Assembly (NCBI RefSeq): GCF_006345805.1
Contig: NC_042998.1
Span: forward strand, 86,366,001-86,430,000
Origin: Octopus sinensis
Taxonomy: Eukaryota
Reading direction: 5' to 3'
Length of the DNA stretch: 64,000 bases
Shown here: one piece after another, positions 8,012 through 60,778 of the stretch
Position numbering within the stretch: position 1 is the stretch's first letter
Layout of the letters: the number at the start of each line of letters is the position of its first letter
The notes under the pieces: generated by a model
Told to the model about the DNA's origin: nothing
Seen by the model: only the letters and a program-made list of their open reading frames with translations
Databases searched by the model: none
Position numbers and translations under genes: made by a program

Positions 8012-8242
8012 CTTAACAGTAGCTGTAGTATCCAAGCCATTGGTGTCGTTAGCCTTAATAAGCATTTGAATATATCCACTGACACTTGAATCAAGATCTG
8101 CTTTTCGATAAATACCACTATTTCTTATTTCAAAGGGAGTCTTCAATTGTTTCAATGCATCATTGCCAAAGTATTCAAAGGATTCAATGAAATATTTATG
8201 CTGCTTATTCTTTGGGTCAGTATCTGCATCATTCACATAATA
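8012..8242 (-). CDS. Cadherin gene (minus strand), 3'-most exon found; atypical last-type EC repeat
   Basis: Acceptor TTCTTGTTAG, donor GTATGT, phase 0/0. Encodes YYVNDADTDPKN...DLDSSVSGYIQMLIKANDTNGLDTTATVK. No stop codon; I found no transmembrane exon in the window. Confidence 0.88.
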
Positions 8243-9094
8243 CTAACAAGAAAATATCAAAGAACCTTATAAATACTTTTGATCCACATATAATAATCTT
8301 AAAATTCAAGAAATACATACATAAATAAAATGGTACAAGCTCTAATAAAATAAATGTGAGCAAAATGTTAAATTTTATAATGAATTGAGTAAATCCCACT
8401 AATACTTATTTTATAATTCCTCTAAAGGGATGAAAAGGCAAAGTCAAATTCCATGTGTTACAGACTCAGAACAATTTCAAATTCCAACTGAAGTTGCACC
8501 ATATGAATTCAAGAAGAGATATCTTCTCTATCAACTTGAGAAATTCAAGACTAAAATATGTATAAAATCTCCCCTACCATAAATTCAATTGAAGGGGAAA
8601 CATGATAGATCTTATTGATTTCTAATCTAAAATAAGGAAGAAATTTATATCTCATCTGTTTGAAACCCTGATAGATTATGGAACTAATTGTCTTGTTTAG
8701 TTTTGTTCTCAATGCCTGGAGTTCAAATACGACAAATACTGAATTTATTTATCCTCCTCTGACCATATGAAAACTATTCAACAACACAACTTAGAAAATA
8801 AACTTGAGTTTCATAAAAAGTAATCAACATAAAGAAAGCTCAGCAATGAATGAGTTTATGGATGATTAATGGGTTGGATGGGTGTTGATAAAGGAGCAAA
8901 AACTCCCAAAATATGGCATATATACCCATTACTCATTTTCCCCTCTTCAATCTCATTGTTTGTCTTCATCTGGCACCTTGGATATGAAAATCATAACTAA
9001 ATCAATACTGGTTACAATTTCTATGAAAAATCAGTAGAGATGATCTTATAACATGGTTTAAGTGCACTACTAATACAGTAGTACACTGTAGTAC

Positions 9095-9317
9095 AAAGGT
9101 GGTGAGCTGGCAGAATCATTAGCACTGGGCAACGGTATTTCGTCTGCTGTTACGTTCTGAGTTCAAATTCCGCCGAGGTCGACTTTGCCTTTCATCCTTT
9201 TGGGGTTGATGAAATAAGTACCAGTTACGCACTGGAGTTGATGTAATCGATTTAATCCCTTTCTCTGTCTGTGTTTGTCCCCTCTATGTTCAGCTCCTTG
9301 TGGGCAATAAAGAAATA
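9095..9317 (+). mobile_element. tRNA-derived SINE (family 1) with probable TSD
   Basis: AAGG(T/C)GGTGAGCTGGCAGAA...GAGTTCAAATTCCGCCGAGGTCGAC. Flanked by AATACAGTAGTACAC at 9072-9086 and 9318-9332. Confidence 0.82.
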
Positions 9318-9395
9318 AATACAGTAGTACACAGTATTGACTCATGAAAACATTTAAAATAAGCTCTGAAAGTTTCAGCATTTAAATATACTTAC

Positions 9396-9703
9396 TTTAA
9401 ACTCTAATATTTTTTCTTCTTTAGAAATATCAAATATAATAGCTTTACTAAGTGTCTTTTCAGTAAATATTGGTGAATTGTCATCAGCATCTTGAATGAC
9501 AACATCTATAATCATTTTGTTGAGTAAATCAGGAGAGGGAGATTTAGGACATGAAGCATTATATGTGACCTCAATACAATTCTGGACAAATACCACCAGT
9601 TTTAAGAATTTTGTTGTTTCATAATCAACTTCTTTCTTGGTCTCAATTAAAGCAGCATTAGAATCATTCTTTAAAACAAAATAGCTTGCAGGTTCACTAT
9701 CAA
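9396..9703 (-). CDS. Cadherin gene (minus strand), exon
   Basis: Acceptor TTTTTCAG, donor GTAAGT, phase 1 in and 0 out. Encodes (V)DSEPASYFVL...KEVDYETTKF...VIQDADDNSPIFTEKTLSKAIIFD...KILEFK. Confidence 0.92.
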
Positions 9704-12439
9704 CTGAAAAAGTTCAAAAGATGTAAATGAAAGAGAATCAAAGCAATTAAAATGGGTTTAGGAAAAAGAAGAAAATCAGTATGTAATTTATTTAATGGGT
9801 AATTTAAGTAAACAGTTGTTTCAAGATGACATAGATTGTAGTAGTCTGAAATTCAAATCAAGTTTATTATTTTCTTTTGCTATGTGCATGAATAGTCAAA
9901 GCCCCACATGAGAACTCAATCACAACACTGCAGACTAATTTATATAATTTCATAATTCTCTCACTGCTCTTTCTTATGTGCTGCACTGTTCTATGATACA
10001 TATAGCTAGATAGACTGGACCATCGAGATTCAAGTGTTTTTGCTAATAAAAAATAGTTTATCTGTTCTGATGTCACAGACAGTAAAAGGCTCATACAACT
10101 TTGAACAGGTTACACAAGCCTCTCCCAAAAGACATTCTGATTCATCTAGACTTACAGATTTGTAATGTGATTCCAAGATACAATATACAATTTACAATAT
10201 ATTCTTTCCTTCTAAATCTATAAGTATAATTCCATGCTGCTCAATATCTCTTAACTTGTCTCGCTCTTTTCTTTATATCTTATAGTATTTTATACAACAC
10301 TGTTCCATTACAATGTTTCCCTTGTTCTGTGTGAACTTCAGTTTAAAACAGAACTTCTCAGTGGTTTGCAATAGAGTGTCTCTTTAGAATGCTCATCATT
10401 CCTCTAGATTATATAATTTCACCATCATTGTACTTAAACACTATAGCATAGATTATAAATCTTTCGCAAATCTGCAGACAAGGATTGATTTATAATTATA
10501 GTAGTTCCTCTTGCTTTTTTAATGCCCTCAATTAATGTATAAACAATAAAACTCTTAATACTGCCTTGAGCTCACTGAGTCTGAAAACCCATTAAATGAT
10601 ACATCTGATGATGAATATTCAAGTAATTTACTTATTTGAATTTGAGAAACAAATAGATATTTATCCTTAAATTTTAAAGAATAGTAGGAATGTGGAATTT
10701 TATTATGCAACTCTAATGTACTATAAAATATATTAAATGTTTTTATAAGTCAACACCACATCCTAGCAGTGCTCTTTACAATATTTTGTTACGGTTATTT
10801 CTACAGAAACTATAGCCAGCACTGATTTTTTGCTATAACGTTTCATATCTTTATATTTAAAACTTTTTAGAATAAAATATATCCAAACAATTCAATATAA
10901 TGAAAATGAACCAGCTCTGGCTCTGAGTACAAATGTCTTGTTTTCATAAGTTTTGAATTAAAATCTTCCACCAAACTCTAGTCACAATTTATGTTCCTAA
11001 CACTAGCTTAATGATAACTAAGTTATTTTAATTAAATTCTTTGTTATATTTAAGATTAATTGAAAGATACATAGATCATCTCAAAATAGGTACGGTAATG
11101 AAAGGGTTAAAATGGGTATCAAAGTTGCTTAGCCCCAGGCTAGCCCTAATCAGACAGACTAATTTCAGTGACTTTCCTTTATTTATCAGGATAGCTAGGA
11201 TCACTCTTTCAGTTTACTGTTTCTATTTTCAAGGTGATATGGAGAGAATTGAGGGCATTGGTTGCTATCAATTGGGTCAAGTGAACTTGTAGAAATTCCC
11301 ATTTGCTAGTGATTGGGCATTAAACTTAACTGCAATATTAATGATTCTTGTCACCTACTTTGGCAATAGTTCTCATTAAGGATATAAGAAAATTTACCTT
11401 CCAGTAACTCAAGGGTGCACCCTGACACATTTTCACCACCATTCTTTTTCTCTTCCAACTGGAGTATCCAGCAAGATATTCTATTATCTTTAACTTCTTA
11501 TCACATAGCATAAAACCAGCTCCCCCAATACATCCCTACCACCTCAATTGAGGAGGAGACTTGCAAGTTACATGGTAACCATACTAGTGCTAGTACCATT
11601 TAAAAAACACCTGACATACTGTGTAAAGTGATTGGCATCAGGATAGGCATCTAGCCATAGACATCAGATCAAAGCAGACATTGAAGATTGAAGTTGTCCT
11701 CTGGCCTGCCAGCTCCTGTCTCACTGGTCAACCCACACTAGCATGGAAAATGGACATTAAATGATGAGGATAATGATGATGATGAACTTGGCACTTAAAT
11801 ATTTGTGCTTACACTGAGGTTTCAATTGTTGACACTTTCTAAATCAATAGTTACTGTTGTTTGACTCAGGTCAGCCTTGATTGAGTGGCCCTATGTTCAA
11901 AGGTATTCCAGATATGACTATGCTGTCTCAACAACAACATTGTTTAATGCCTTTCTTGCATTAAGACAGTAGAGTGTGATTTGAAGGAAATTTGACAGTT
12001 ATTTCTGGAAAGTCCAGCAACCTTTTATAAGCACCCTCAGTGGCTTGTATTCAATAGTTAGGGTATCACAACCAATTCCAAGAGGAACACTCCACTCAAA
12101 ATCCAAGTTTTATAATCTACTCCAAAGGAATTAAATCCATACTCCTTATTTATATCTAAGTGAAGCATTTCTTTATCTTAAATAGCAGCATGCAACCAAC
12201 ATCAAATTGCCTTTCTTTTGACATTTGTACCATAGAAGTGACCAATCAGAAGACTAAATTCCTACAGCATTTGGCATTGTACTTCTTTTAATCTATCCTC
12301 AAAACTGTCTATATGCTGCTCACCTAAACAAGGTGGAGGACATCTTGCTGGTGAGTTTCATTTTAGGCTTGTTTTTACATCTAGGTACCCTCACTAATAC
12401 CAACCAATTTAGAGAGTGCACTTGGTGCATTTCTCTTTT

Positions 12440-14010
12440 TGTGGCACCAGGGAACAACAAATTGTAGTCTGAATGTTATATTAGGAGTGAGCTAGAGAAA
12501 ATAGGCTATAGGCGAAGGTTATTAAAGTTCTGGAAAAAATATTATCCTTAAGAAAGATGTGAATGAATAACGACTGACTGATCAGATTAGACAAATTAAG
12601 ACCAAAGGGTCGTTAGAGAAGATGGGAAAAGAGAAGATTATAATGGAAGTGAGAAAGGAACTGCAAGGATCTACTGGTCTGGAAGAAATGGTCATAGAAC
12701 AAGGGAGCTTACAAAGCTGGGACATAAACAGAGAGAATCTATGTACCTCTAACTAGAGAGTCACTTGCAGAAAATAGCCCAGAATTGGCTACTTTAAGTG
12801 ACAGAATTCTGGAAGTAATTGTCCTTGAGGAAAGGAAAATGTTGCCATCATTAAAGCTATGTGATAGAGTAAAGTTAAGGTCAGAACTAGGAAAGTAAAT
12901 GAAGTTGTCATGAGAATTCCAATTAAGGATATCACTGTGTTAAATTCCTTGATGCATGCTGTTGCTTATGTCATTACCAAGAAGATGGGAATGTTTATAG
13001 AAAAGAAAGTACAGAGTAACAAAGTCTTATACCAGAAAAGGAGAATAAGAAGACTTAAGTAAGATAAAGGAAGTAAGGAAAGGAAATACGAGGTTCAATG
13101 AAAGAGAACATATTTACATAAATAAAAAATACCTGGTAGACAAGGATATTCAATTTATATTGGATATGTTAAAACAAAATATCAAAACAAGTACCAAAAG
13201 ATATGAGGGAAGGTGTCTACAGTTTAAACAAAATCAACTGTTTAGAACAAATAAGAAGCTGTTCTATGAGAGACTCTAGATGGAGGAGATAAAGAAGAAA
13301 GAGAGTTACTCAATCCCAAAGAAGCAACTTCATTTTGGAGCAAGATCTGGTCAGAGAATGTCAAATACAACAAAAGGGTATTCAAACTCCATGAAGTGGA
13401 AGAAGAATTCAAAGATATGGAGACACAGGACATTGTCATCATGTTGGAAGATAGTTAAGCCAGTGTTGGTAAGATGAGAAATTGAAAGGCAACTGGTCTG
13501 GACCTAGTTCAGGCATTTGGGTTCAAGGTTTTGACAAATTTACATCCTAAATTACAAAATATCCTGCAAGGCTGTATAGACCAAGGAACTGTACCAGAAT
13601 GGATGGTCAAAGAAAGAACTACCTTGATTCAGAAGGCCCCAGTCATAGGTGCCATTACCAATAACTATCATCTAATTGCCTGTTTACCTCTGATGTAGGA
13701 GCTTCTAACAGGGATAATGAGAAAGGAATTGTACTACCATCTTAAAGGAAATGAACTACTAAAGACAGCAGGAACATATCATGAGGAACACAGGATCAAT
13801 TGCTGATTGACAAAGCAATTCTTAGGAACTGCCAAAGAAAGTTGACAAATCTATCAATAGGTTGGATTGACTAAAAGGCATATAATATGGTTCCTATTCT
13901 TGGATTCTGAAATGCCTAGAGATGGCTAGGGCAGCAGAAAATTTGATTTATTTGTTCAAAAACAGTATGAGAAATTGGAAGATAGTTCTGACTACAGATG
14001 GAAAAGAAAT
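12440..14010 (+). mobile_element. Degenerate R4/Dong-like (RLE) LINE, RT N-terminal part
   Basis: Remnant motifs FWSKIWSENVKYN, NW/KATGLD, VPEWMVK.RTTLIQK, IACLPLM, WID.KAY.MVP.SWILKCL. Many stops and frameshifts. Confidence 0.75.
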
Positions 14011-14547
14011 TAGACCAAATGCTATCTGGATGTCTTGAGAGGAAATTCATACGGTCTGAATAAGGGATTCCATAAACTGCAGGCAATTAATTGGTTTCAT
14101 GTTTTTGTGCAGTTTGTAATCAGCTCTAATTTTTTCTGAATCATGGAGAGCAGCAACTAACAATAAACAGTAAGGGTGATATAGAGTCTACTTCCAAGAT
14201 TCCCCTCTTAATAATAAATCTTTGCATCAATTTTCATATGCCAACAAATAGGTTTCATGTGACATATTTTTTCTGAGCATGGAAAGCAGAGGTTAAATGA
14301 TGATGGTGATGATGTTGATGTATAGGCTCTAAATGCACTCTATAAAAAATCGTTCAGAAACAAAGCTTTCATGAAAATAAATAGCCTTAAACATAATCAA
14401 GATATTTAAAATTATGATATTTATTTCGTAAGATGCATTATGATTTTGAGGTGTATCTTTTGCTAAAACAAATTTGTCTTATATTCTTTAAATGCAGTAA
14501 TTGACTCATTTATTTTTGTTAACAAAGTTTTCAAAGTTTTTACTTAC

Positions 14548-14758
14548 CAATAGTATAACATAAATCAAATCCAGAATCTTTAGCCTTCACCGAACCAATA
14601 ACTATCGGTGGTGGTCCTTCTTTAATTGTGAATGTGTCATTAGGCTGGAGAAATTCAGGGGGCTCATCATTAATGTTTGTAACTTTCACAGATAACAAAA
14701 ATACTGTAGGAATTGAAGGGAGCGATGGAGTACCAGAATCAGAAGCTTTTATTTGAAC
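14548..14758 (-). CDS. Cadherin gene (minus strand), exon not in the ORF track
   Basis: Acceptor TTTCTAG, donor GTAAGT, phase 0 in and 1 out. Encodes VQIKASDSGTPSLPSIPTVFLLSVKVTNINDEPPEFLQPNDTFTIKEGPPPIVIGSVKAKDSGFDLCYTI. Confidence 0.92.
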
Positions 14759-15089
14759 CTAGAAATTAAATATTGATAACATTTTTTTTTATTCACATTT
14801 ACTTTTATTTATAATTCACATTTACTTTTATTTCTTTCTATTTATATCTGCAGCACCAGCAATGCTTATATTTACAATGCTCATAACGCTTATACTTACA
14901 ATGTTGCTAACACTTACTCTTACCCCCAGTAGGGGCAAAAATCTTAACATGCTCAAATATTTCAATGCTGACAGGTCAAAAGTGAGAACAGGTGTAGCAT
15001 GTCTATCAAACAAACATGGAAACCTTTTTTTCAGGCGCTGAAAAAATCTCCCCTTACCTGGTTTCCTCCCACATTCCTTTCTAAGTTTT

Positions 15090-15871
15090 TAGAGTTGGCA
15101 CTGTCAACATAGGCGCATTAAAAGGTAGGTCTATTGTGATTGTAGTGATGCTTGAAGGAGATGTATTGATGAAAGAGGTGAGGTGGAGAGGAGCTTCAGC
15201 CAGGGTCCTCATAGGAAAGGCACATAGGCATAAAATCACAAGCAAAGCACAAAGGTATAAAATCTTCAGGGAAGGTAACAGTGATGGAGTAAGGGGTGTA
15301 AGCATACTCCTCACAGAGAAATGGATGGATAGGGTGATAGAGGTAATAAGGGCATGCAATAGAGTGCTTAAGTTTAGGCTAGTCTTGCAGAATAGTATAT
15401 CTACAATTATCTCTGCCTATGCACCACAAGCAGTCTACCAAATGATCAGAAGGACCACTTTTATGATATACTTCTACAGGCTACCTCAAAGACAAGTGAC
15501 AATGATCTCATCTTTGTGGCTGGAGATTTTAATGAGCATGTTGGACAGAAATTTGGTATCTTCCATGGTGTTCATGGAAGCCATGGAATTGGTTCCTGAA
15601 ACAAAGAGGGGGCTAGGTTATTGGAGTTCTGTGATGCAATCTGCTAGCCGGATTGATCTCATTCTCACCAGATAGCGGGATGTATGATTGCTCTTAAATA
15701 CAAAGACCCTCCCTGGTGAAGAATGTACCCACCAGCATAGACAAGTCATCAGTGACTTTAGACTCAAGGCCAGAAGGATGCCAAGAAGCAGACGAATACA
15801 GAAAAGAAGGATTTGGAAGCTTAAGAACCCTTCACATGGTCAGAGATTTAGGGACATCCTCATTGAGAATT
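15090..15871 (+). mobile_element. RTE LINE fragment, apurinic endonuclease region
   Basis: GV.ILL.EKWMDRVIEV.R...TIISAYAPQ, IDLILTR, NTKTLPGEEC..QH..V.SDF. Homologous to about 55350-56040 (minus). Confidence 0.82.
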
Positions 15872-17790
15872 TGTAGTCAGATTGAAAAAGAGGCATTGGC
15901 AATCATATTTGGTGACAAGAAGTTCCATAGGTTTTTCCATGGAAAATGTTTCTGTTTGCAAACAGACCATCTCCCACTAATGACAATATATGGATCCAAA
16001 ACAAGGAATCCCAACACAAACAGTAAATAGATTGCAGCAATGGGGCACTGTACTATTATAGTACAACTACAAAATGGAGTATTTGAAGCTGAAAAATTAG
16101 GGCATACAGATGGTTTGTCCAGATTGAGACCAAAACAGGGCGAGCCATTCAACTACAGCTCTAAGAGCTGAAAGTGAAGTGAAAAACGTGATGTGGAACA
16201 TGGTACGAAAGTTACCGGTGACTCTGGAGGATATAAAGCGGAATGCAGTAAATGACAAGTTTATAATGGAAACAAAAAGAACACTGTGGTCAACAAAAGA
16301 AAATAGGAAAAGTTTGGTGCAAAACAAAACCAAGATGTGAACCTATACTTAATATGTGATGACATACTGATGTATGCACAAAGAGTAGCGATGCCAGAAA
16401 CACTACAACAGAAAATGATGAGAGAATTTCACATTGAACATCCTGATATTTCAAGGATGAAAGCTTTAATGTGCAGTTACATATACTGGCCGAAAATGGA
16501 CAGAGAAATTGAAAATTTGGTAAAAGGCTGTAGAGAATGTGCTCTAGCAGCAAAATTGCCCACTATAAAATGTGAAGTTTGGCCAAAAGTAGATGTTCTG
16601 TGGTCAAAACTACACATTGATTTTGCTAGTCCTCTAAATGATTCATACTACTTAGTGGTAGTTGATAATTTTCCAAAATGGCCTGAAATTTATAAGTGTA
16701 AAAAACAAACCTCCTCAACCGTAATAAATCTTTTACATGAATTGTTTGCAAGATTTGGCATCCAGACAAGATAGTGTCTGACAATGGAATGCAATTTGTG
16801 TCTAGCGAATTTTGTTCACAGTAGAACATATAACTACAGAGCTATACCATCCCAAATCTAATGGACAAGTAGAATGCTTTGTCAATACCTTCAAAAGAGT
16901 CCTGAGAAAATTGAATAAGGAAGTCACGGATGAAGTAGCACTAGAACAATTTTTAAGAGTGTACTGTGTGATGCTAAATTTGAATACACCAGCAGGTAGC
17001 TCACCAGCAGAGCTGATGTTTGCAAGGAAAGTAAAATCAGTTTTTGATAAATTGCTATCTGGCAAGAAAAGAAAAAGTGCCAGGGAAGACATAGTAGGAT
17101 TTCCTAAAGTTGGTGATAAGGTGTATATGAGGACATACAAAAATGGAAAGCAGAACTGGGAAGCGGGCGAAATTATCAAATACATGTTTTTATTATAAAG
17201 TGAAGCAAGAACAATACACACACACACACACACACACACATACAGGTAGACAGTGAGGTTACTAGCCTCTGGCTAACTTCACAAAGCATTGCCTCTTCAT
17301 TTACAATGATATATTGGGTGAAAAGTAGAAAAGGCATACAAAAGAGACACAGGAACCAACTGAAAAAGAGATTCATAGAAAGCGAACCAAAGAAGTCGGA
17401 AGAACCAATGGAATGGTTGTACAATATTTTCCAAGTACCAATGCTACTGCAGGTGATCAAACCCAGGCATACAAGTGAGAGGAAAAGAAAACATGGAATT
17501 CTTGAAAATAGATACCAAGCAAAAAAAATTAAATTGTATGGAAAAAAAAAAACTCAAAACAGGGAGGTGGGGGGGTGAATAAAAAAATTTTACTAAATAA
17601 AATAATTCTTCCACATAAAAACTTAAAATGGGAGATGTTGTAGGTAATAATAATACACTCTCCCATGTGACAAGTGGTATGACATAGTCACTATAAATAG
17701 GAGAGTACAAGACAGTAGAGAGCATATGCAGCAGGCAGTTGAGAGATAGTCATGTCTTTACTGATGTTTGGGCATTATTAAAATCCAACA
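15872..17790 (+). mobile_element. Ty3/Gypsy LTR retrotransposon remnant (RNase H, integrase, PPT, 3' LTR)
   Basis: SQIEKEALAIIFG.KKFH, QTDH.PL, HPDISRMKAL..YIYWP, LHIDFA, SDNG.QF, YHPKSNGQVE. Purine tract AAAATGGGAGA followed by an LTR with TGTTG...CAACA ends. Confidence 0.9.
17636..17790 (+). repeat. 3' LTR of the Gypsy remnant (155 bp)
   Basis: Starts TGTTG at 17636 right after the PPT and ends CAACA at 17790. Contains TATAAATA and ATTAAA. Confidence 0.78.
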
Positions 17791-18099
17791 TTTTAAAGAT
17801 TATAACTGGTGATGAGGGTTATAACAGTTGGTTCTGGACTTGTGCAGCTTACATTTTCTTTGTGCTTCTGTGATCTTATTCTGTTTATAGAGGTAGCAAC
17901 TCTGTTGGTGCAGCTACACCAGGCAAAGCAGTCTTGTGCCTGCATTTCCCAGGTGTCAGAGTTGATCTGAGCGCACTTCTGTGAGGTTTTGAGTGTATAT
18001 TTGAAGTGCTTTTTCTGCCTACATTATGTGCACTTGCTTTTTGACAATTCACTCTCCAGATCTGTGTATATTGACATGAAGCTGACACATGCTTCACAA

Positions 18100-18510
18100 A
18101 TGGAAGCTCAGCTTGCAGGTGGCTATGAAAATCAATATGGGAGAGGAGAGGCATTAAGCTGGCCACCAAGTTGAAGATGTACAAAGCAGTTGTACTGCCT
18201 ACACTACTGTATGCCTGTGAGACTTGGACAGTTTACAAACACCATGCCAAATGGCTAAACTGCTTTTGCATGTAGTGTCTGAGAAAGCCAATGAAAATCA
18301 CCTGACATGGTTCCAGACACTGATGTCTTCTCTTGAGCTGATCAGCCAAACATTTATGCTTTGCTGAGGAGAGCACAGGTTAGGTGGGCAGGCCAACTTG
18401 TTTGAATGCCTGACACATGGCTACCCAAAAAACTGTTTTACAGTCAACTGGCAGTAGGTAACTGGAACACATATGAATAAGCTAGAAAACACACTGAAAA
18501 TAAGAATACA
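18100..18510 (+). mobile_element. RTE/BovB-like LINE, C-terminal fragment
   Basis: YKAVVLPTLLYACETWTVY.HH, RW.G...RMPD..LPKKLFY.QL motifs, degenerate. Confidence 0.7.
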
Positions 18511-18571: not shown

Positions 18572-18751
18572 TTCGTATGTTGTTTTCTTTTCATAATCTA
18601 GCTGCTTGCGCAAAATAACATTTCCAGATTTGTCTACTTTAAAATTACTGTTATCAGCTTTACTTTCCAGTTCATAATTAATTTCAGCATTAACACCAAA
18701 ATCTTCGTCTTTTATGTTGATTTTATATATTCTAGTGTCAGGACATGTTGA
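18572..18751 (-). CDS. Cadherin gene (minus strand), exon
   Basis: Acceptor TTTGCAG, donor GTAAGA, phase 0/0. Encodes STCPDTRIYKINIKDEDFGVNAEINY...KQLDYEKKTTYE and continues the preceding ...TIPE. Confidence 0.92.
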
Positions 18752-25720: not shown

Positions 25721-25802
25721 TCCCTGAGCGTCTGCTAATACTTTACATGTACCACATCTTTGTGTAGTTGTTTTTTTTGTGTTTGTTTTTTTTGGGATTT
25801 AC

Positions 25803-43830: not shown

Positions 43831-43840
43831 CATATATATA

Positions 43841-47520: not shown

Positions 47521-47899
47521 TGAAAACAAACAATCCCCCATAATATCAGCAACCTTGAGATAATACAAAGAATAGATGCATGATGAATACATAACCAAAA
47601 CACCAGAATTCTCTCTCTCTCTCACACACACACATACATGTTCATGCTATATACAGAAATCTCACTACTATGTACTGCATACATATTATATGGAACACTT
47701 AATGCAATGTAAGACAAATATTAAACAAATCATTGCATGTACTTTAAGGCAACCAGGACTGTGGTTGATTGTGCCTTGAAAGCAAATTAAAAAAGACTAC
47801 TGAAATATTAATAATGATTAACAAGTAAATACACACATTATTAAACAAATAAAAAAACAAATAATGAAACTTAAACATTTCATTTTCTTTTACTTGTAG

Positions 47900-48019
47900 A
47901 ATTCAAAAGGAATTGAAGACTACATGAAAATTGAAGATAAATATAATGGTTTCATCACAGTAGTAAAAGCACTGGACTATGAAACAAGAAACTTTTTTGA
48001 ATATACAGTACAAGTATTT
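47900..48019 (+). CDS. Cadherin exon on the plus strand (second half of an EC repeat)
   Basis: Acceptor CATTTTCTTTTACTTGTAG, donor GTAAGT, 120 nt, phase 0/0. Encodes NSKGIEDYMKIEDKYNGFITVVKALDYETRNFFEYTVQVF (G-x-I-T-V...LDYE motif). Confidence 0.85.
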
Positions 48020-50639: not shown

Positions 50640-51470
50640 GTTCATAGGGGGGTAATTCAATAAATAACTCTAATCTAACAAAAGTCAACAAGCATTTTTA
50701 TAAGATTATTCTAAGAACATGCCTCAACTTTGATGACTGTTTCAATGCGAGTCACAGATTTTTGACATATCTACACTAAACAGACCTTTTTTTGGACATC
50801 ACCTGGACAATGGCAGTATTCAGTGAAGCTGTGATATCTTGAGTAAATTGATTAGTCTCCCTTGCAACAATAACCCAAATGTAATCAATGGATTTAAATC
50901 TAGTGATTGTGTATGTCACAAGATAGGTGCCATATGACTAAAGATTGTCTAGATTGTCTGGCATTGATTCTTGGATTTTGTTAGATGGTACTGAGTCTTG
51001 TTGAAATATGCATGGCCTTTCACTGGACACTTCACCTATCCAAAGCTTAACAAATGTCTTCCACACTTCGATGTATCCAACAGCTTTAATTCTAATATCT
51101 TGTTAAAAGATGTGAAGTTGTGTGACATGACCTTCATTACTCACCACTCCTAAAACCGTCACAGTTGCTGGAAACTTATTGTTCATTACTCAATGAATAA
51201 CAGAAGGATCTGCACACACTGATGTTTTTCTCATTAAAGAAGAACAAAACATGCTATGTTTGTGAGGGTTCTAGCCTCGTTAAGTAACCACTTGGCATAG
51301 ATCAAATGGTTTTCCTGTTTTCGCTGACATAAATCAGCTTCTCCTCAGTACATATGACTTGTATTAAATGTTTGTGGACCACGATTTTGATAATCCATTC
51401 CACACCTATGGTTCTTTGGTGGTGAGCCTCAATGTTTTCAGAATCATCAATGTTTTGCGCCTGTTGGATG
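50640..51470 (-). mobile_element. Degenerate Tc1/mariner-superfamily transposon, maT (DD37D)-like
   Basis: KFPATV.VLGVVSNEG.V, IFQQDS.P, DLNPLDY.W..V.RETN motifs. Confidence 0.65.
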
Positions 51471-52462
51471 AATTATGGTATCCTTATTATGTCTGAACAT
51501 TTAGAATTTTTTTTTCCTCTTTGATACAATTGAAACATTCTGCCAGAGTCTTTCAATTCCATCTGAACTTTGTATAATAAAAAAGATTGTAAAATATATC
51601 TAAGAGTTGTTAAAGATGAGGGAAATCGAAAGGGTAGGAGGAAAGAGGGCTGATCAGTGGAAAGTACATATTGATAGGGATGAGTAGTGCCATAGTTAGA
51701 AGAGTGATGGGAGGATCTTGCAACATTTGGACAGTTGGCAATTTCTAAATCACTTTGTTCTACACAATGAATGCATATCTTTTCATTTCTCATGTTAACA
51801 TGTTATTTACTATGATGGATCTAGAAAAAACAACCTTTTTAACTGCTTTGAAGAAAATAATATACCGATAAGTAAATTTTCTGAAATACCCTGTATATGC
51901 TGCTCTCAATTATTGTAAGCACATTGAATGAAATTAACCTCATAACTTGAAGCAATCTAATGCTACTACACCATGATATTTGCCTCAATGCATCAGAGGA
52001 ATTACTGACTTCCTTGAAGTGAAGATTAGAAAGATATACATCTTGAAGAACTTCAAAGGGCTTGAAACAACCTTTGTCATTGAAAACTACAAAAGTCCTT
52101 GTAAAGGACACTAGTGCACAATGCCAAAAGTTCAACCTTTGCTATGTAAAGTTTGAACCAAATAGTGCATTGTTTAGGTTTCAAAGGTCCATTGCACTTC
52201 ACATTTTTGCCAAAAAGCTTGGGAAATCTTTTTGGTGTGGATATAAATGTTTTTAAAAGACAACTGGATGTCTTGTTATCTGATATTCCTGATGAACCTA
52301 CTTCATAGTAAATAATGCAAATGAGAGTTGCAGCTTCAAAGAATGAAGGTTAATTAAATTGTAGCAACATCAATGTCAGTATCCCAGTATGTACACAGAT
52401 TGCAGCCAAAATGTGTCCAAGAGTAGAAGAGTAACAGAGGAAATGTGTAAATATATATGTGT

Positions 52463-52507
<45 letters not shown>

Positions 52508-52679
52508 ATTGTTCAGTTTTATTTCAAGATTTCTTGCCAATAGAGAAAAAGCCAGTTTCTAACCTAGATCCAACATCAACAACAGGGTAATTTTGTTTGT
52601 ATGTATGTGTATGTGCAGATTTGTAATTCTGCCTTATGCATGTATTCTCATGCACATAGTTGCATATCTAGACATGCTC

Positions 52680-55600
52680 TTCATCATCATCATCATCGTT
52701 TAACATCCGTTTTCCATGCTGGCATGGGTTGGATGGTTTGACTGGGGATTGGCAAGTCAGGAGGCTGCACCAGGCACCAGTCTGATCTGGCAGTGTTTCT
52801 ACAGCTGGATGCCCTTCCTAACACAACCACTCTAAGAGCGTAGTGGGTGCTTTTTACATGCCACCAGCATGGGAACCAATCAGGTGGCATTGGCATCGGC
52901 CATGTTCGGATGGTGCTTTTTACATGCTACCGGCACAGGATCCAGTTGGGGTGGGAGACTAGCATCAATCATGTTTGGATGGTGCTTTTTACATGCTACC
53001 AGCACAGGAGCCAGTTGGGGCAGGGAGGCTAGCATCAATCATGTTTGAATGGTGCTTTTTACATGCCACCAGCACAGGGAGCCAGTAAGGTAGCAATGGC
53101 AATAACCCATGCATGGATGGTGCTTATTGCGTGCCACCAGCATGGGAGCCAGCCAGATGGCACTGGCAGCTGCCACAACTACAATTTCCATTTGATTGTG
53201 ATTTGATTTTACTTGACTCAATAGGTCTCTTCATGCACGGAATATCGCCCAACGATTCAAAGATACTTTTTAAATGGGCTGGTTATGCGACACTGGTGTA
53301 GGCTATGGCTGTGGTGTCACTTTACTTGCTTGGTCTTCTCAATCACAGTATCTCCAGAGGTCTCGGTCTTTCATCATTGCCCAACATTCGAAGGTCATGC
53401 TTCACTACCTCGTCCCATGTCTTCCTGGATCTCCCTCCTCCATGGGTTCCTTTCACTCTTAGGAGGTGACACTTCTTCACTGAGCTCTCCTCATCCATAT
53501 GCAGCACATAACCATACCATCACAGTGGTCTCACTTACACATCACATCTGATGCTTCTTATGTCCCACATTTCTCTAAGGGTGCTTACACTCTGTCGTGT
53601 GCACACACTGACATTATATATCCAGCGGATCATACCAGCTTCATTTCTTTCAAGCCTGCGCATGTCTTCAGCAGTCACAGCCCATGTTTCACTGCCATGT
53701 AGCATGGCAGTATGCACACATGCATCGTACAATCTATCTTTCACTCTCAGCAAGTGGCCTTTGTCACCAGTACAGCTTTCTGAACTTTGTCCAGGCTATT
53801 CTTATTCTAGTAGCAACACTGCCCGAGCATCCACCCTCACTACAGACTTGGTCACCTAGGTAGAGGAAGCTATCAACTACTTCTAGTTTCTTCCCTTGGC
53901 ATGTGATGGAATCAGTTTTCTGAGCATCTGCGGTGTTTATTACCCCTGTGCATCCGCTGCACACAAAAGCTGTCTTCCCAGTTAACCTTCCTTTGATGTT
54001 GCTTCTCCTCTTATGCATCCATAGCTTACACTGGGTACATCTTATGGAGTTTCTACCTACAACTTTTCTACAGATTGTGCAGGGCCATCTACCTGAAGGG
54101 GTTAATGATGTGTTCACCTTTCTACTTACTGGGACTTTAGTTTTGCAACATTGAATCTAAGGCCCTTCAATTCTAAATCTTGCTTCCACCTGAAATTTCT
54201 TCTCTAGATCTTGTAGTGATTCTGCTATGAGATCAAGATCATCAGCATAGAGGAGCTTCCAGAGGCAACTTGTCTTGAATTCCTGTGTTATTACCTGGAG
54301 GACTATGATGAATAAGAGAGTCCTTAGGGCTGATCCTTGGTGAACCTCTACTTCTACCTGGAATTCTTCACTATGATCATTGGCGACCCTTACCTTACAA
54401 ACGGCATCCCTGTAAAGGTCTTCTACAGCTCTTATTAACCACTTGTCAATCCCTAGTTTCCACATTACCCACCCTGTCAATGGCTTTCTCTAAGTTAACA
54501 AAAGCCAAGTATAGGGGTTTATCTTTTGCTAGGTATTTCTCCTGCAGTTGCCACACCAGGAATATAGCATCAGTGGTGCTTCTACCTGGCATAAAACCAA
54601 ACTGCAAACTCTCTCCTTAATTAGTTGGGCTATCACCCTCTCATGACCTTCATCACCTGATCCAGCAGTTTGATACCCCTGTAGTTATTTCTATCTAAAG
54701 TATCACTATTACGTTTGTAGCAGTTGACTATGGGGCTGCTACACCAGTCATTGGGTACGACTCCTTTGTAAACTACCAGGTTTACAATACAGGTGACTGG
54801 GCCAAAATACACAACACCAGATATTTTAAGCATCTCAGCAATGATTCCTGATGGGCTGGGTGCTTTTCTTAACTTCATATCCTTAATTTCTTTATCTACC
54901 TGGGCACTGTCGTTTCAAGTAGCTGGTCTCTCAATTTGGTCAACCTTTAGCAGACTCTCCTTCTTCCATTCCTTCTCCACATTTAGCAGTCTTTTGTAAT
55001 GGCTTCTCCAAGCCTCTTTTTGCAGAATCTTTAAAAGTAAGTGCACCGTCATCCATGCTGACACATTTCTCCCCTGTGACATCATATTTTTTCTCACACA
55101 CTGTCTTGCAATCCAAAATACTTCAGTTCTTTGGTCCTCACATCGCTGAACATCGAAAACCTCTTCTTTTCTGCCTCTCCTTAGCTTTGTATACCTGTTC
55201 CCAGCCTCCCTCTCTGGCTATCTGGTACAGTTCCTTGCTACCCCCACTCTTCCAGGCTTTCCAGGCCTGTTTGTTTGCTCTAATGGCCTTGTCTACTGTA
55301 TTATTCCACCACCACGTTACTCTAGGTCTGGAAGGGACTTTACACTAGCCACAGATTTGATCTGTGGTGCTCAGTAAGCTGTCCTATGGGAATTCCCAGT
55401 TACCCTCTATGTCCAAAGTCTAGCTCTTCTTCCCTTTCATCAAATTTCTCAATGAGGATGTCCCTAAATCTCTGAATATGTGAAGGATTCTTTAGCTTCC
55501 AAAGCCTTCTTTTCTGGATTGGTCTGCTTCCTGGCATCCTTCTATAATGTGACTCATGACTAGTCTATGCTGGGGGGGGGGGTGCATTCTTCACCAGGAA

Positions 55601-56040
55601 GGGTCTTTGTATTTAAGAGCAATCTTGCATCCCACTGCCTGGTGAGGATAAAATCGATTTGGCTAGCAAAGTCACCTGATTGATAGGTTATCAGGTGGCT
55701 GTCTGGCTTCCTGAAGTTAGTGTTGCAGATTAATAGGTTGCATGCATCACAGAACTCTAGTAGCCTAGTTCCCTCTTCATTTCGGGAACCAATTCTATGA
55801 CCCCTGTGAATACCATGGAAGATACCATATTACCATCTGACTTGCCCATTAAAATTTCCAGCCACAAAGATGAAGTCATTGCCACTCGTCTTTAAGGTAG
55901 CCTATAGAAGGGTATCATAAAAGTGGTCCTTCTGATTGTTTGGTAGGCCCACTGGTGGGGCATAGGCAGAGATAATTGTGGCTTTACTATTCTGCAGAAC
56001 TAGTTTGAGCTTAAGCACTCTATTGCAGGTATGATAGAGG
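52680..56040 (-). mobile_element. Long decayed RTE LINE (endonuclease, RT, Cys-rich domain, 3' UTR, tail)
   Basis: TIISAYAP, KAP.PSGI.AEMLK, NYRGIKLL, VHQGS, LLYADDL, WPCTICRK.VG.NSI.CTQCKLW.HK, MLHGSETWA, (CAT)n tail. Confidence 0.92.
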
Positions 56041-56057
56041 GGATAGGTTTTCCTGTG

Positions 56058-56207
56058 AGAGAAGAGTGATATCTGACGATGGTGGTAGGAGAAGTGAGAG
56101 ATCCGGTAATGGTGGTAGAAGAGAGATCCCGTAATGGTAGTGGGAGAAGAGAGAGATATCCGGTATTGGTGGTAAGAGAAGAGAGAGATATCAAGTATTG
56201 GTGGTGG
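56058..56207. repeat. About 30-bp purine-rich minisatellite (about 5 units)
   Basis: Unit resembles GAGAAGAGAGAGATATCCGGTAATGGTGGTA, at the truncated 5' edge of the long RTE. Confidence 0.75.
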
Positions 56208-56487
56208 GGCTGGGAATGGGTGGGCGCACCACAAAAAAGCAAAGGTTAATTTAGGAGATTTCATTTAGAAAATTACATGAAGAATTAAGGTGAAATAAAC
56301 AAATTACATGAAGAATTAAGGTGGAACAAACAAGCAAGGGTTGATTCAGAGAGTTGGTATGAAAAAATATGTAGTCAACTTTAAATTTCATCAAGAAAAT
56401 TACATGAAGAATTAAGGTGAAATGAAGGCTGAGGGAGAGAGATTAGGAAGTAATATATTGAACGGTCAATTGAAATAATTCTTTTCT

Positions 56488-56700
56488 TGTCTAGGCACAA
56501 GGCCCAAAATTTTGGTGGGAGGGGTTCAGTCAATTAAATTGACCCCAGTGCGTAACTGGTACTTAATTTATCGACTCCAAAAGGATGAAAGGCAAAATTG
56601 ATCTCGGTGGAAATTGAACTCAGAACGTAAAGACAGATGAACTTCTGCTAAGCATTTCATCCAGCGTGCTGACATTTCTGCCAGCTCGCTTCTTTTCATT
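56488..56700 (-). mobile_element. Family-1 SINE (another minus copy at about 44750-44900)
   Basis: Reverse complement of the GAGTTCAA...GAG(G/A)TC core. Confidence 0.72.
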
Positions 56701-57149
56701 TTAAATAATTAGCTTATGAAAGCAGGTATTAGTAAATACACATTAAAGTATTAATAGTGATGATGGATGAATGCGTGAAAAGGTCGAAAAAAATGAGAGA
56801 ATATCTTAGTTTAGCAATGCATAACTGGGCATCTAAGAAACGTTTGCATTGGAAAGAGTTGTGTGAAAAGCAGGGAAGAAAGCTTGTGAGTAAGTGTTTT
56901 ATAGACATGCTATGGCTGGAAGTGGACATTATGGAGGGTGCTGAAGACAATAGCAATGATAGTAACAGAGTAGCATAAGAAGCCATAGTGAGTGGGAAGG
57001 AATAAGAGAATAGTACGAAAAGTACTTAGCCACCATGAACAAGCAAGGGTTAATTTAGGAGATTCCATTTAGAAAATTAGATGATGAATTAAGGTGAAAC
57101 GAAGGCAGAGAGAGAGAGAGAGAGAGAGAGATTAGGAAGTTATATATTG

Positions 57150-58100
57150 AAGGGTCAACTACAAAGTTTTATAGATTTTTACAGTTCCAGTGATAAATTT
57201 GATCTGTAGTTTTCGAATTTGCTTTCTCCTCTCTGATTTTGAGAAGCCTAATTTCTCAAGATTGGTATTTAGGTGGTGTGTTATATATCTCAGGGCCCCA
57301 AGAATTACAGGTATAAACCTGAACTTGTAATCTGGATAGAGTAACTGCAGATTTCTCAATAGTTCAGTGTAGGTGTTCTCATTTTCACTGATTGTCAGCT
57401 TTATGTTAACATCTGCTGGGCAGCTAATTTCCACAGCTGTGCACAGTTTCTCTTCTCTATCTCAAATCAGGTCTGCTGTGTTTACATTTTATTGAGGTCT
57501 TCACTGGTACATTCCATCAGTATTCCTTTTTATTATGAGTGGCTATGGCTTCTACCATACTGTAGGTTCTTATTTCTTTGGCCTTGGGGTTATTCTTCCA
57601 ATGGATTTCATTATAGAGTGTCCTAGCTACAACATCATGTCTCATTGGTAGATAATGCCATGATGACATTTTCAGACAACTACTTATGATGTGGCTGATA
57701 TCTTCTGTGTTAACTACACAAAGTATGCATTGGTTGTCACATTTTACTGCTTTTCTTGCATCTCTATCCCTTTTGTGCATCAGGTACTTGGTTAATATTT
57801 CCCGTTCCTGGATTGCAAACACATATCCTTTAAAGAGGGAGGTAGTAATCCGGCTATTGGTCCATGATAAACTGCTTTGATGATCAATGTTACTATCATT
57901 TTGGAGCTTTCTACTAACACTCATGCATAGTCTTCTGCTCATACAGGCTCATCCTTTCATCCGATGATACGTTACAGTAGAGTCGTGCGACTTCTTTGGG
58001 CATGTATTCTAGGTTATGAGACAATGAATGTTGCAGAAGGAGCTGCTTTCCAAGTCTTATGACGTTATCAGTCTCATGTATGCAAACTTGGTGAGGGGAT
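57150..58100 (-). mobile_element. RLE-type non-LTR retrotransposon 3' part (family distinct from the R4-like copies)
   Basis: GY.FAIQE.EI.TKY, C..C....EDISHIISSC, RHDVVA, EISCP.D.N...Y..L.RNLQ..YPDYKF..P.ILGA. Confidence 0.78.
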
Positions 58101-58308
58101 GCACTTCAACACTTGGTGTATGCATGTATGTTCTTGGATATAATCATCATTATCATCATCATCATTTAACATCCAGTTTTTATGCCAACATGGTTTGAAT
58201 AGTTTGACAGGATTGGACAAGCCATGGGACTATGGTTTCTATGGCTGGATACTTTCCTTAACACCAGTAACTTTATAAAGTGTGTATGTATATGTATGCC
58301 TATGTATG

Positions 58309-58345
<37 letters not shown>

Positions 58346-58346
58346 G

Positions 58347-58387
<41 letters not shown>

Positions 58388-58398
58388 CACACAAACAT

Positions 58399-58431
<33 letters not shown>

Positions 58432-58714
58432 CACACACACGCCACACACATATATATATATATATATCACACACACACACATATATAATATGTATCATCA
58501 TCATCATCATCGTTTAACGTCCGTTCTCCATGCTAGCAGGGTTGGACGGTTCGACCGGGGATCTGGGAAGCCAGGAGGCTGCACCAGGCTCCAGTCTTAT
58601 CTGGCAATGTTTCTACAGCTGGATGCCCTTCCTAACGCCAACCACTCCGTGAGTGTAGTGGGTGCTTTTTACGTGCCACCTGCACTGTATATATATATAT
58701 ATATATATAAACTA

Positions 58715-58918
58715 TCAATAATACTATTCCACAGCCAAACCAACAAGAACTGGAGACTGGTTTATTTGAAGTATGGACAAAAATTCCTTTGGAAACAATT
58801 CAAACTTTGTAAGAGTCCAGAATTCAAGCTGTTATTACTGCCAAAGGTGGTCCTACCCCATATTAAAATAAATTTGTTTGAAATTTTAAGGTATTTCCAT
58901 TATTTTGTCCAACCACTG
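58715..58918 (+). mobile_element. Tc1-like transposon 3' end
   Basis: RIQAVITAKGGPTPY-stop, then a TIR-like end ATTATTTTGTCCAACCACTG followed by TA. Confidence 0.75.
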
Positions 58919-59147
58919 TATAATCATCAGCATCATCATGATCGTTTAATGTCCGTTTTCCATGCTGGCATGGGTTGGATGGTTCGACTGGGGTCTGGAA
59001 AGCCAGGAGACTGCACCAGACTCCAGTCTGATCTGGCAATGTTTCTACAGCTGGATGCCCTTCCTAATGCCAGCTGCTTCAAGAGTGTAGTGGGTGTTTT
59101 TTACGTGCTATCGGCACAGGGGCCAGAGGGGGCTGGCATCAACCACA

Positions 59148-59216
<69 letters not shown>

Positions 59217-59299
59217 GTCATAGTAAGTAACTAGATGACCCTGCTCAGTCTGTAGAAAAGGTGTAGGTAGAAACTTCATAAGATGTACCCAGTGTAAGG

Positions 59300-60430
59300 T
59301 TTGGACACAAAAGGTGCAGCAACACCAGAGGAAGGTTAACAGGGAAACTAACTTTTGTGTGTGGAAGGTGCACAGTTACAATAAATGCTGCAAATGTGCA
59401 GAAAATAGACTGCCAGGGGGCAAGCTAGAGATAGTAGATAGCTTCTGTTATCTAAGTGACCAAGTTAGTAGTGGAGGTGGATGTTCTGAAAACATAGCTG
59501 TGAGAATAAGATTAGGCTGGGCAATGTTTAGAGAGCTCCTACTCCTGCTGGCAACAAAGGGCCTCTCTCTCAGATTGAAAGGCAGATTGTTTGATGACTG
59601 TGTGCAAACAGCTATGCTGCATGGCAGTGAAACATAGGCTATGACAGCCGATTACATGCATAGACTTGAAAGAAATGAAGCCACTATGCTTCACTGGGTG
59701 TGCAACATCAGTGTGCATGTTCAACAGAGTGTACGCATTTTGAGAGAAAAGTTAGGCACAAGAGGAATCAGATGTGGTGTGCAAGAGAGATGACTGTGCT
59801 GGTATGGTCATGTGATACCTATGGACGAGGACAGCTGAGTAAAGACGTGCTGGTCTCTAATTGTGGAAGAAACCTGTGTTATAGGTAGACCCAGGAAGAC
59901 ATGGGATGAGATGGTGAAGCATGATCTTTGAACTTTGAGCCTCACAGAGGCAATGTCTGGTGACGGAGACCTTTGGTAATGTGCTGTGCTTGAGAGAACC
60001 TGTCAAACCAAGTGCATCCATGCTGGTGGTATGTAAAGGACATCTTTTGAACATTGGGCCTCACAGAGGCAAAGTGACTGAGTTCCTTTCAAGTGTTGGG
60101 CTGCATGGTGGCAAAGTAGCCAAGTTCCTTTTGAGTGTTGGGCCTCATGGAGGCAATGATCAAGACCTTTGGCATTATGTAATGCTTGAGAAGACCCATC
60201 AAGCCAGGCAAAATTGTTGTCGTGTCAAACATATTGGCACGTAAATGCACCCCAGCATCATGCAAATGACCTGTGCTGGTGGTATGTAAAAGCACCCATT
60301 ACACTCAGAGTGGTTGGTGTTAGGAAGGGCATCTGGCTGTAGAAAACCATGCCAAATCAGACTGGAGTCTGGTGTAGCCTTCCAACCTATTACAGCATGG
60401 ACAATGGACATTAAATGATGATGATGATAT
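59300..60430 (+). mobile_element. RTE LINE 3' part with short 42-bp array and (GAT)n tail
   Basis: LEIVDSFCYL.DQVSSGGGCSE, KGLSLRLKGRLFD.CVQTAMLHGSET, RPRKTWD. Confidence 0.85.
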
Positions 60431-60661
60431 ATATATTTAAATCAACTTATACACATTATTTTTTTAGTATCCATTGTTCCATACTGGCCTATTGCACAGC
60501 TTATCATATCACCATTCATTTTAGTTTCCTTTGTTTCCTCACCTGGGATGTGCAACGTACTAAAAGGAATGTTAGGGAAATAGAAATGTAATAGCGTGTA
60601 CATAAATTATATTCTACAATGAATTGAAGATAGAATGAAATAATTTTAAACTTAATTTCAG

Positions 60662-60778
60662 GATGGAAACTTTACAGCAAATGCTTCTGTATGGATCCAA
60701 GTTGAGGATGTTCAAGATATGCCACCAGCATTTACAAGTTCCGGCTTTGTTGAAAAAATCAAGGAAAATTCAAGCAAG
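60662..60778 (+). CDS. Cadherin exon on the plus strand (EC linker DVQD-PP-F)
   Basis: Acceptor TAATTTCAG, donor GTAATA, 117 nt, phase 0/0. Encodes DGNFTANASVWIQVEDVQDMPPAFTSSGFVEKIKENSSK and joins the 47900-48019 exon in frame (TVQVF|DG). Confidence 0.87.

Follow-up and report, generated by a model that had tools for sequence, protein, structure and literature searches.

Cadherin exons in opposite orientation across an assembly gap in Octopus sinensis: a head-to-head pair or a product of scaffolding in a duplicated CDH23-related locus?

A stretch of 64,000 nucleotides from Octopus sinensis (RefSeq assembly GCF_006345805.1, contig NC_042998.1, positions 86,366,001 to 86,430,000 of the forward strand; hereafter the window, with positions counted from its first letter) carries cadherin exons on both strands, and raises the question of whether two cadherin genes lie there head to head or whether the arrangement was created during assembly. 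Seven minus-strand exons (8012-34677) lie to the left, and two plus-strand exons (47900-60778) to the right, of a run of 100 N at 37327-37426, the sole N run in the window. At this scaffolding gap the intron upstream of the first minus-strand exon (m1) meets, head to head, the intron upstream of the first plus-strand exon (A), and the outer limits of the arrangement are 3' ends, that of m7 at 8012 and that of exon B at 60778. The layout is striking, yet its most likely origin is the scaffolding of a duplicated locus, with the alternative of two paralogues gaining some support from the copies that we found.

The seven minus-strand exons all show AG...GT borders and matching phases, and their spliced frame yields 653 amino acids (aa) without a stop, with an E value of 5.7e-106 against solved cadherin structures. 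Relatives were found by a search with the concatenated peptides, followed by cluster look-ups, and all the m1-m7 junctions proved to be contiguous both in an annotated O. sinensis protein (XP_036356629.1, hereafter P0129) and in a protein of Argonauta hians (GAB1597288.1, P0010). Exon m1 (34477-34677) opens in phase 1 and encodes the last strand of the eighth extracellular cadherin repeat (EC8), a KDINDCYPVF linker and the start of EC9, while m2 (33041-33354) encodes the end of EC9 and the start of EC10; both are about 100% identical to P0129. The end of EC10, the whole of EC11 and the EC11/EC12 linker lie in m3 (30711-31226), which shares 170 of 172 residues with P0129 when counted by eye and 97.7% over 176 aa in tblastn. 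The first half of EC12 is encoded by m4 (18572-18751), the most divergent of the exons, with 81-83% aa identity to P0129; its diagnostic stretch reads STCPDTRIYKINIKDED in the window and STCPGSTIYKINISDKD in the other type of m4. Exon m5 (14548-14758) carries the EC12/EC13 linker NINDEPPEF and is 91% identical to P0129 at the aa level. Exon m6 (9396-9703), again starting in phase 1, spans the end of EC13, a DADDNSPIF linker and the start of EC14, at 98% identity to P0129. Most of EC14 is encoded by m7 (8012-8242), which has phase 0 at both ends, reads YYVNDADTDPKNKQ...TTATVK and matches P0129 at all 77 of its residues (98.7% over 78 aa, the single mismatch falling beyond the exon).

On the plus strand, exon A (47900-48019) encodes the second half of EC2, and exon B (60662-60778) the end of EC2, the linker EDVQDMPPAF and the start of EC3. 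Their borders are ...ttgtag|AATTCAAAAGG...GTATTT|gtaagt and ...ttcag|GATGGAAAC...AGCAAG|gtaata, respectively, and they splice in frame 0 to a peptide of 79 aa, NSKGIEDYMKIEDKYNGFITVVKALDYETRNFFEYTVQVF|DGNFTANASVWIQVEDVQDMPPAFTSSGFVEKIKENSSK, with the joined reading NSKGIEDYMKIEDKYNGFITVVKALDYETRNFFEYTVQVFDGNFTANASVWIQVEDVQDMPPAFTSSGFVEKIKENSSK (E 8.7e-23 against solved cadherins); KYNGF and DGNFTANAS are marker stretches of the A/B type present in the window. The A|B junction is contiguous in P0129, where all 79 residues recur at aa 452-530; by eye, the 40 residues of exon A are those of P0129 aa 452-491, with 97.5% identity to a further, upstream copy in the same protein and 33 of 40 residues shared with a second O. 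sinensis model (XP_036356631.1, hereafter P0009). The nine exons, the coordinates of A and B and the in-frame joining of A to B had been proposed from the nucleotide sequence alone, and the splice borders and the phases bear them out.

To place these parts we drew up an 1829-aa reconstruction of the protein from P0129, P0009, P0010 and the O. sinensis gene LOC115232682 (P0132), the last having the same C-terminus as P0010, which itself runs from mid-gene through m1-m7 into a non-EC domain, a transmembrane (TM) helix and a tail. The reconstructed protein has a signal peptide, 14 EC repeats with 13 linker motifs, a membrane-proximal domain of about 115 aa, a TM helix at aa 1667-1688 and a tail of 141 aa. 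On it A/B occupy aa 183-261, and m1-m7 aa 893-1545, which begin with the last strand of EC8 and run through EC14, immediately ahead of the membrane-adjacent domain (MAD). The two exon sets are, as had been predicted, N-terminal and membrane-proximal, and they are complementary, non-overlapping parts of one gene type. Missing from the window are the parts for aa 1-182, comprising the signal peptide MLSIIFIGLLLMLGTVEA, EC1 and the linker ILDENDNVPVF, and about ten middle exons, which would read GTLITTVTAEDQDRG...NTVVGVGTAT. After turning the right contig, the order becomes A, B, ..., m1-m7 on the minus strand.

This order is the one encountered in relatives. P0129 ('protocadherin Fat 4', 1876 aa) has the A/B segment at aa 452-530 and the m1-m7 segment at aa 1161-1815, encoded on one strand. 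In P0009 ('CELSR2-like', 1262 aa) an A/B-type segment at aa 183-261 (about 80% identical) and an m1-m3-type segment at aa 890-1236 (91-96%) likewise derive from one strand, within 106 kb. In the Argonauta locus (L002) a single strand carries, in collinear order within 28 kb, the exons that correspond to P0009 from aa 325 to its C-terminus. The remainder is covered by a 622-aa cadherin model upstream on the same strand, and AVEN lies 7 kb downstream, also on that strand; roughly ten exons (about 630 aa) separate A/B from m1-m7 there. Given the collinearity in Argonauta and in P0009, the ancestral gene was collinear, with A and B followed by about ten exons (630 aa) and then m1-m7. To restore the order in the window, the right contig must be turned, which brings its unseen far end to position 37326. 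The sequence-only reading had held that collinear, same-strand order in another assembly would refute the paralogue model; that order is indeed seen, but it is too weak to refute them, because Octopus has several copies and collinearity elsewhere is no proof of a single gene here.

The flanks of the gap are transposon and microsatellite sequence. On the left, the intron upstream of m1 holds a fragment of a long interspersed nuclear element (LINE) matching zf-RVT (35608-36219, plus strand), and the final 635 bp of the left contig (36692-37326), which are single copy in the window, terminate in an (ATA)n microsatellite. On the right, a LINE reverse-transcriptase fragment (37427-38480, minus strand) runs into the N's. 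The left contig ends 2.6 kb upstream of m1 and the right contig starts 10.5 kb upstream of exon A. No coding sequence or reading frame crosses 37327-37426, and a predicted open reading frame (ORF) drawn through the N's is an artefact of the ORF listing. Database look-ups for independent contigs, made for a 112-aa ORF adjoining the gap and for P0001, returned no record.

The final 635 bp of the left contig are collinear with positions 6264-5602 of the O. bimaculoides locus (L001), and homology to that locus extends up to the edge of the gap. An attempt to bridge the gap with it failed on the right in both orientations, the next 1.7 kb of L001 finding no match there, which is weak evidence given that L001 is itself gap-ridden, scrambled upstream of m3 and devoid of m1 and m2. 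Since O. bimaculoides sequence continuing the left flank is lacking beyond the N's, they would not stand for a small, faithfully spanned gap, which counts in favor of an artefact.

Scans with motifs, phmmer and tblastn in all six frames of the 64 kb revealed no further cadherin exons, and sensitive tblastn searches found nothing orthologous anywhere in the window when the queries were portions of the O. sinensis proteins: 451 N-terminal aa, 630 aa from the middle, and the C-terminal parts. The earlier failure to see a signal-peptide or EC1 exon between 37427 and 47899 is thereby upheld, and neither these nor any other upstream exon is present in 34678-47899 on either strand. With m1 opening in phase 1 on the final strand of a repeat and A opening midway through one, both require upstream exons; the exon preceding m1, the exon preceding A, all the 5' exons and the approximately ten intermediate exons were not found in the window.

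We favor an assembly artefact for the join because it omits these obligatory neighboring exons on both sides, and because the exons are intact and constrained in frame and the relatives are collinear. The window would then present two non-adjacent pieces of a multi-exon, CDH23-related cadherin gene lying in a chromosome stretch that holds several duplicates of it. The left contig would contribute the EC9-EC14 exons of one copy on the minus strand, and the right contig the two plus-strand exons of the EC2/EC3 junction. The run of 100 N would mark the scaffolder's join, which no transcription unit could cross. Errors in the orientation of short contigs are common in duplicated, repeat-rich DNA, and the most likely cause would be that one contig was mis-oriented or misplaced while a repeat-rich, segmentally duplicated locus was being scaffolded. 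If both pieces belong to one copy, it would be the far end of the right contig, past about ten more plus-strand exons, and not position 37427, that abuts 37326. We infer that such an artefact is more likely than a true head-to-head pair. The principal rival is that the inversion is real, with the 3' half of one paralogue facing the 5' part of another and the 5' regions of both hidden in the gap, in a long stretch that went unassembled or was collapsed. The gap would have to conceal well over 100 kb, since aa 1-892 of the minus-strand gene and aa 1-182 of the plus-strand gene are missing, and aa 1-892 fill most of the 106 kb that P0009 takes up from its start to m3; none of the required exons occurs in the 13 kb that separate m1 from A, nor in the rest of the window. 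Moreover, RefSeq holds no O. sinensis protein for the minus-strand m1-m7 copy, as the 90% cluster of P0009 and P0129 has only those two members.

The multiplicity of the locus in Octopus bears directly on this rival. While the locus is single-copy in Argonauta, it is multi-copy in Octopus, with at least three different 5' parts (two in P0129, one in P0009), and its old 3' lineages number at least two. P0129 holds EC1-EC3 twice, at aa 41-296 and 297-560, the two being about 93% identical by eye; the A/B peptide of the window exactly matches the second copy and 75 of 79 residues of the first. This model, XP_036356629.1, has a gene range of 549 kb, within which AVEN lies on the opposite strand, and it stops before the TM exons; it is chained and chimeric, apparently strung together across several copies of the gene or across contigs in the wrong orientation. 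We had considered the identity to P0009, about 80% for A/B as against 91-96% for m1-m3, as proof of two genes, and dropped this argument because P0129 and P0009 differ from each other in the same pattern (73-83% identity in EC1-EC3, 92-100% thereafter), P0009 being merely another paralogue.

A three-way comparison of the window with a second O. sinensis locus (L003, CM016860.1:86575730-86652389) and with L001 further resolved the 3' lineages. L003 holds the P0129 exons from m5 to the membrane-proximal domain as well as the TM/tail exons of LOC115232682, and across window positions 6384-18109 (L003 1-13484) the 3' half of the window shows a mosaic of divergence from it, from 0-2% up to 25%. Over 7650-12450, which includes m6 and m7, identity between the window and L003 is 98-100%, and each of them shares about 93% with O. 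bimaculoides; m7 itself has 99% nucleotide identity to L003. Substitutions amount to 1.0% against L003 in the shared tract and to 7% against O. bimaculoides, values that point to an Octopus of the vulgaris/sinensis group, and the window coincides with none of the O. sinensis loci compared. Outside the tract, identity to L003 falls to 75-91%. In the part downstream of m7 the window matches O. bimaculoides at 92-94% and L003 at 78-91%, and at m5 and upstream of it the window, L003 and O. bimaculoides are roughly equidistant, with 472 bp around m5 showing just 95% identity to L003. From this pattern of identities it follows that the 3' half of the window is orthologous to the O. bimaculoides chromosome copy and an old paralogue of L003, and we infer that 7650-12450 represents a recent gene-conversion tract of about 4.8 kb between old paralogues. 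A simple orthology between the window and L003 was rejected, the 99% identity being confined to 7650-12450 and the sequence downstream of m7 being nearer to O. bimaculoides. The m6 copy of L003 (about 9813-10120) departs from the window by an internal 1-bp indel; tblastn splits this exon into two frames, and LOC115232682 begins at an internal Met just after it; this indel is either an assembly error or the mark of a frameshifted copy.

Several of these observations weigh against a mere scaffolding artefact. Real paralogues exist, in the form of the three 5' parts and at least two old 3' lineages, and conversion tracts and old lineages in a multi-copy locus are what a real inverted pair would be at home in. 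The A/B segment identical to that of the window is chained in O. sinensis to L003, a 3' half that is non-orthologous to the window's, so that the two pieces of the window may belong to different copies; although one and the same O. sinensis model is the nearest to both exon sets, that model is the chimera. AVEN, which is on the same strand downstream of the gene in Argonauta, lies on the opposite strand inside the 549-kb O. sinensis model, which hints that an inverted 3' block is perhaps present in the O. sinensis assembly too. AVEN was not detected in the 10-kb downstream flank in O. bimaculoides (tblastx gave repeat matches only), and none is listed in the 10-kb downstream flank of L003 in O. 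sinensis. Pieces of the family on unplaced O. sinensis scaffolds make large missing stretches plausible. A real inverted pair is thus a serious candidate, though it falls short of being probable.

The unplaced scaffolds bear on a further alternative, namely that one of the two contigs is an uncollapsed haplotig that was inserted beside its allelic partner, creating a false inverted duplication. In one of them (L004, VCDQ01000287.1:1-37549), 37 kb of the chromosome copy recur with a divergence of 0.3-0.5%; another (L005, VCDQ01000384.1:1-41957) passes straight from P0009-type middle exons to the TM/tail exons, skipping about 850 aa. The copies of the 3' end in both are haplotig-like, with 0.3-0.7% substitution divergence. 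The O. sinensis assembly has a BUSCO duplication of 5.2%, and the O. vulgaris genome a heterozygosity of 1.22% and a repeat content of 69%, with Hi-C scaffolding and small contigs placed manually (PMC10700109). However, the two contigs of the window carry different parts of the gene and neither duplicates the other within the window, while the divergence of the 3' half from L003, ranging from 0-2% to 25%, is far above the allelic level outside the conversion tract. We consider a haplotig at this join highly improbable. O. sinensis models of the family also include truncated ones, and given these, the unplaced copies, the chimeric model and the scrambled O. bimaculoides assembly, the region is demonstrably hard to assemble.

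The exons themselves allow us to ask whether either set is a dead fragment. Across m3-m6 (365 codons), comparison with O. bimaculoides L001 gave 0.091 nonsynonymous substitutions per site (dN) and 0.065 synonymous substitutions per site (dS), a ratio of 1.40; for m6 the ratio is 1.5, and for m4 alone it exceeds 10 (dN 0.156, dS 0.015). Substitutions amount to 8.0% in exons and 7.0% in introns. The 1095 exon bases contain no indels and no stops, while the introns (15.3 kb) show 6.7 gap-opens per kb, a rate at which about 7 indels would be expected in the exon bases. That the exons substitute as fast as the introns with the frame kept suggests diversifying selection rather than decay. A recent real inversion or partial inverted duplication, leaving at least one exon set as a truncated, non-functional copy, could draw on the partial copies present in O. 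sinensis (the extra EC1-EC3 in P0129, and L005) and on a dN/dS of about 1.4 that could pass for relaxed constraint. Set against it are the nine exons with intact splice sites and open frames, the lack of indels and stops where about 7 indels were expected, and the 79 of 79 identity of A/B to an annotated O. sinensis protein, and we regard it as improbable. As all nine exons are intact and their frame is constrained, the gene is in use and should be collinear in life.

Weighing these points, we give even chances to the layout being a scaffolding artefact of some kind. Within this, a flipped contig of one and the same gene is a tentative proposal, and the wrong joining of contigs from different copies is unlikely. 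The sequence-only reading had preferred one gene with its right contig flipped; the complementarity of the parts and their correct order when turned stand, while an origin of both sets from the same copy is conjectural.

As for the family to which the gene belongs, tandem EC repeats and calcium linkers of the DRE and DxNDN types, by which the cadherin superfamily is recognized, are present, and the Pfam Cadherin model (PF00028) matches the orthologous models with E values of 1e-98 to 5e-121. Pfam detects in these models only cadherin-type domains, in addition to a PCDH15_12th match just before the TM helix. Searched exhaustively, the last 276 aa of the Argonauta protein matched single stretches near the C-terminus of proteins of 1600-2340 aa from bivalves, gastropods, annelids, a brachiopod and a hemichordate; among those homologues, the descriptive names (molluscan, brachiopod and hemichordate) are 'cadherin-23(-like)', assigned automatically. 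A profile of the membrane-proximal domain (A1), built from 15 homologues including P0010 of Argonauta and P0132 of O. sinensis, aligned over its full length with MAD28 of CDH23 (8tri_A 348-458) at E 1.9e-30, and with MAD12 of PCDH15 (6c10, 6bxz) at about 1e-6; the domain was studied on orthologues, its own exons lying outside the window. MAD12 is a ferredoxin-like dimerizing domain, predicted for CDH23 and PCDH24 as well (bioRxiv 10.1101/460097). At the other end of the molecule, one D[VT]QDT.P motif was found at aa 190-257 in each of the homologues from Potamilus, Nucella, Argopecten, Lymnaea and Ptychodera, which had been chosen by C-terminal similarity alone, ignoring their N-termini; the octopus proteins read EDVQD[MK]PPAF at that linker. 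In the longer form D[VT]QD[TMK]PP.F, the motif occurs once per protein at aa ~240-257. The early clue of a DVQD linker of the CDH23/Cad87A type thus holds at the family level, from both the MAD28 match and the linker of these homologues.

The likeness to CDH23, a tip-link cadherin of the Cr-2 subfamily as named in bioRxiv 10.1101/460097, therefore extends to both ends: a ferredoxin-like membrane-adjacent domain stands between the last EC and the TM helix in both, a solved EC1-3 fragment of CDH23 (5w4t_C) aligns in register with the N-terminal EC1-EC3, and at the family level the EC2/EC3 linker is D[VT]QD..P.F. The octopus proteins taken alone match MAD28 weakly (E 0.16), and the gene type has 14 EC repeats in about 1830 aa, with homologues of 1600-2340 aa. 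CDH23 has 27 EC repeats in about 3350 aa, and its EC2/EC3 junction reads DMQDMDP. By their sequences these proteins form a conserved family of 'short' CDH23-related, MAD-bearing cadherins that is not CDH23 itself, as it has 14 EC repeats and not 27. The cytoplasmic tail of the octopus gene type bears the motifs RKLRAA..., PGTN... and NPLY. In the molluscan and hemichordate homologues (P0142, P0147, P0161, P0175, P0188) we observed a common RKLKAAT juxtamembrane motif and PGTN...NP[LIV] tail motifs; the family of these five is a conserved yet unstudied 'short CDH23-like' group.

Other well-known cadherins fit less well. PCDH15/Cad99C shares the single-pass topology and the long ectodomain, and P0010 matches Pfam PCDH15_12th at E 5.7e-5, but this match lies under the curated cut-off (23.5 against 27 bits) and is much weaker than that to MAD28 of CDH23, and PCDH15 has 11 EC repeats as against 14 in the octopus family. 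CELSR/Flamingo was rejected even though CELSR1 is the best PDB match of both peptides, the score being a sum over many EC repeats and the architecture unlike: CELSR has nine EC repeats, EGF, LamG, HormR and GAIN domains and seven TM passes, whereas the octopus protein has one TM helix and a 141-aa tail. FAT4 and Dachsous (27-34 EC repeats, with EGF/LamG in FAT) are ruled out by the 14 EC repeats and the lack of EGF or LamG. The automatic names Fat 4, CELSR2-like, dachsous and protocadherin-11 are misleading, as the proteins have no seven-pass, EGF or LamG parts. Octopus protocadherins are a looser parallel: expanded clusters of them were reportedly described by Albertin et al. in 2015, and they are likewise said to be a lineage-specific multiplication of cadherin-superfamily genes with divergent ectodomains. 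They reportedly have 6-7 EC repeats, mostly in one big exon, and stand in large tandem arrays, in contrast to the gene studied here with its 14 EC repeats and MAD, many small exons, introns of 4-13 kb and few copies.

Several other features of the window deserve mention. On the minus strand at 8956-9030 a short ORF, EIVTSIDLVMIFISKVPDEDKQ*, follows an acceptor site and has 60% aa identity to the terminal exon of XP_014782467.1 of O. bimaculoides; it is bypassed by the m5-m6 splice of all the longer models, and although it might be an alternative exon that truncates the protein, it is more probably a spurious terminal exon. In the m3-m4 intron (25593-29390, minus strand), about 200 aa of a non-cadherin part of XP_052821843.1 ('dachsous', O. 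bimaculoides) match collinearly with 64-93% aa identity, which looks like intronic or transposon sequence absorbed into that model. A 308-aa open frame without a Pfam match lies in the intron between A and B (48970-49893, minus strand). Intronic remnants of transposons include a mariner-type transposase, an integrase of a long-terminal-repeat retrotransposon (Integrase_H2C2/rve) and the zf-RVT LINE and LINE reverse transcriptase noted above; the remnants are located at 3141-3896 (minus), 16307-17195 (plus), 35608-36219 (plus) and 37427-38480 (minus). Long TA-rich simple repeats occupy about 974-2865, 25869-26861 and 58271-59212.

As scaffolded, the window gives two truncated cadherin 'genes' or a false inversion, and the same region has in RefSeq yielded a 549-kb chimeric model and misleading names. 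Once the pieces are recognized as EC2/3 and EC9-14 of a CDH23-like gene with 14 EC repeats, curators can look for the parts that should flank them. In this respect the case is a routine problem of annotation, though the gene family involved is of moderate interest. The fast change of the exons with their frame kept makes the protein a candidate for a rapidly diversifying adhesion or recognition molecule, and the reality of the head-to-head layout bears on the origin and regulation of its copies. It is conceivable, though we hold it doubtful, that the arrangement is real and belongs to a small AVEN-adjacent cluster of inverted and tandem copies of CDH23-like, 14-EC genes under positive selection and gene conversion; if true, this would be a second family of cadherin-based recognition molecules in cephalopods, independent of the protocadherins.

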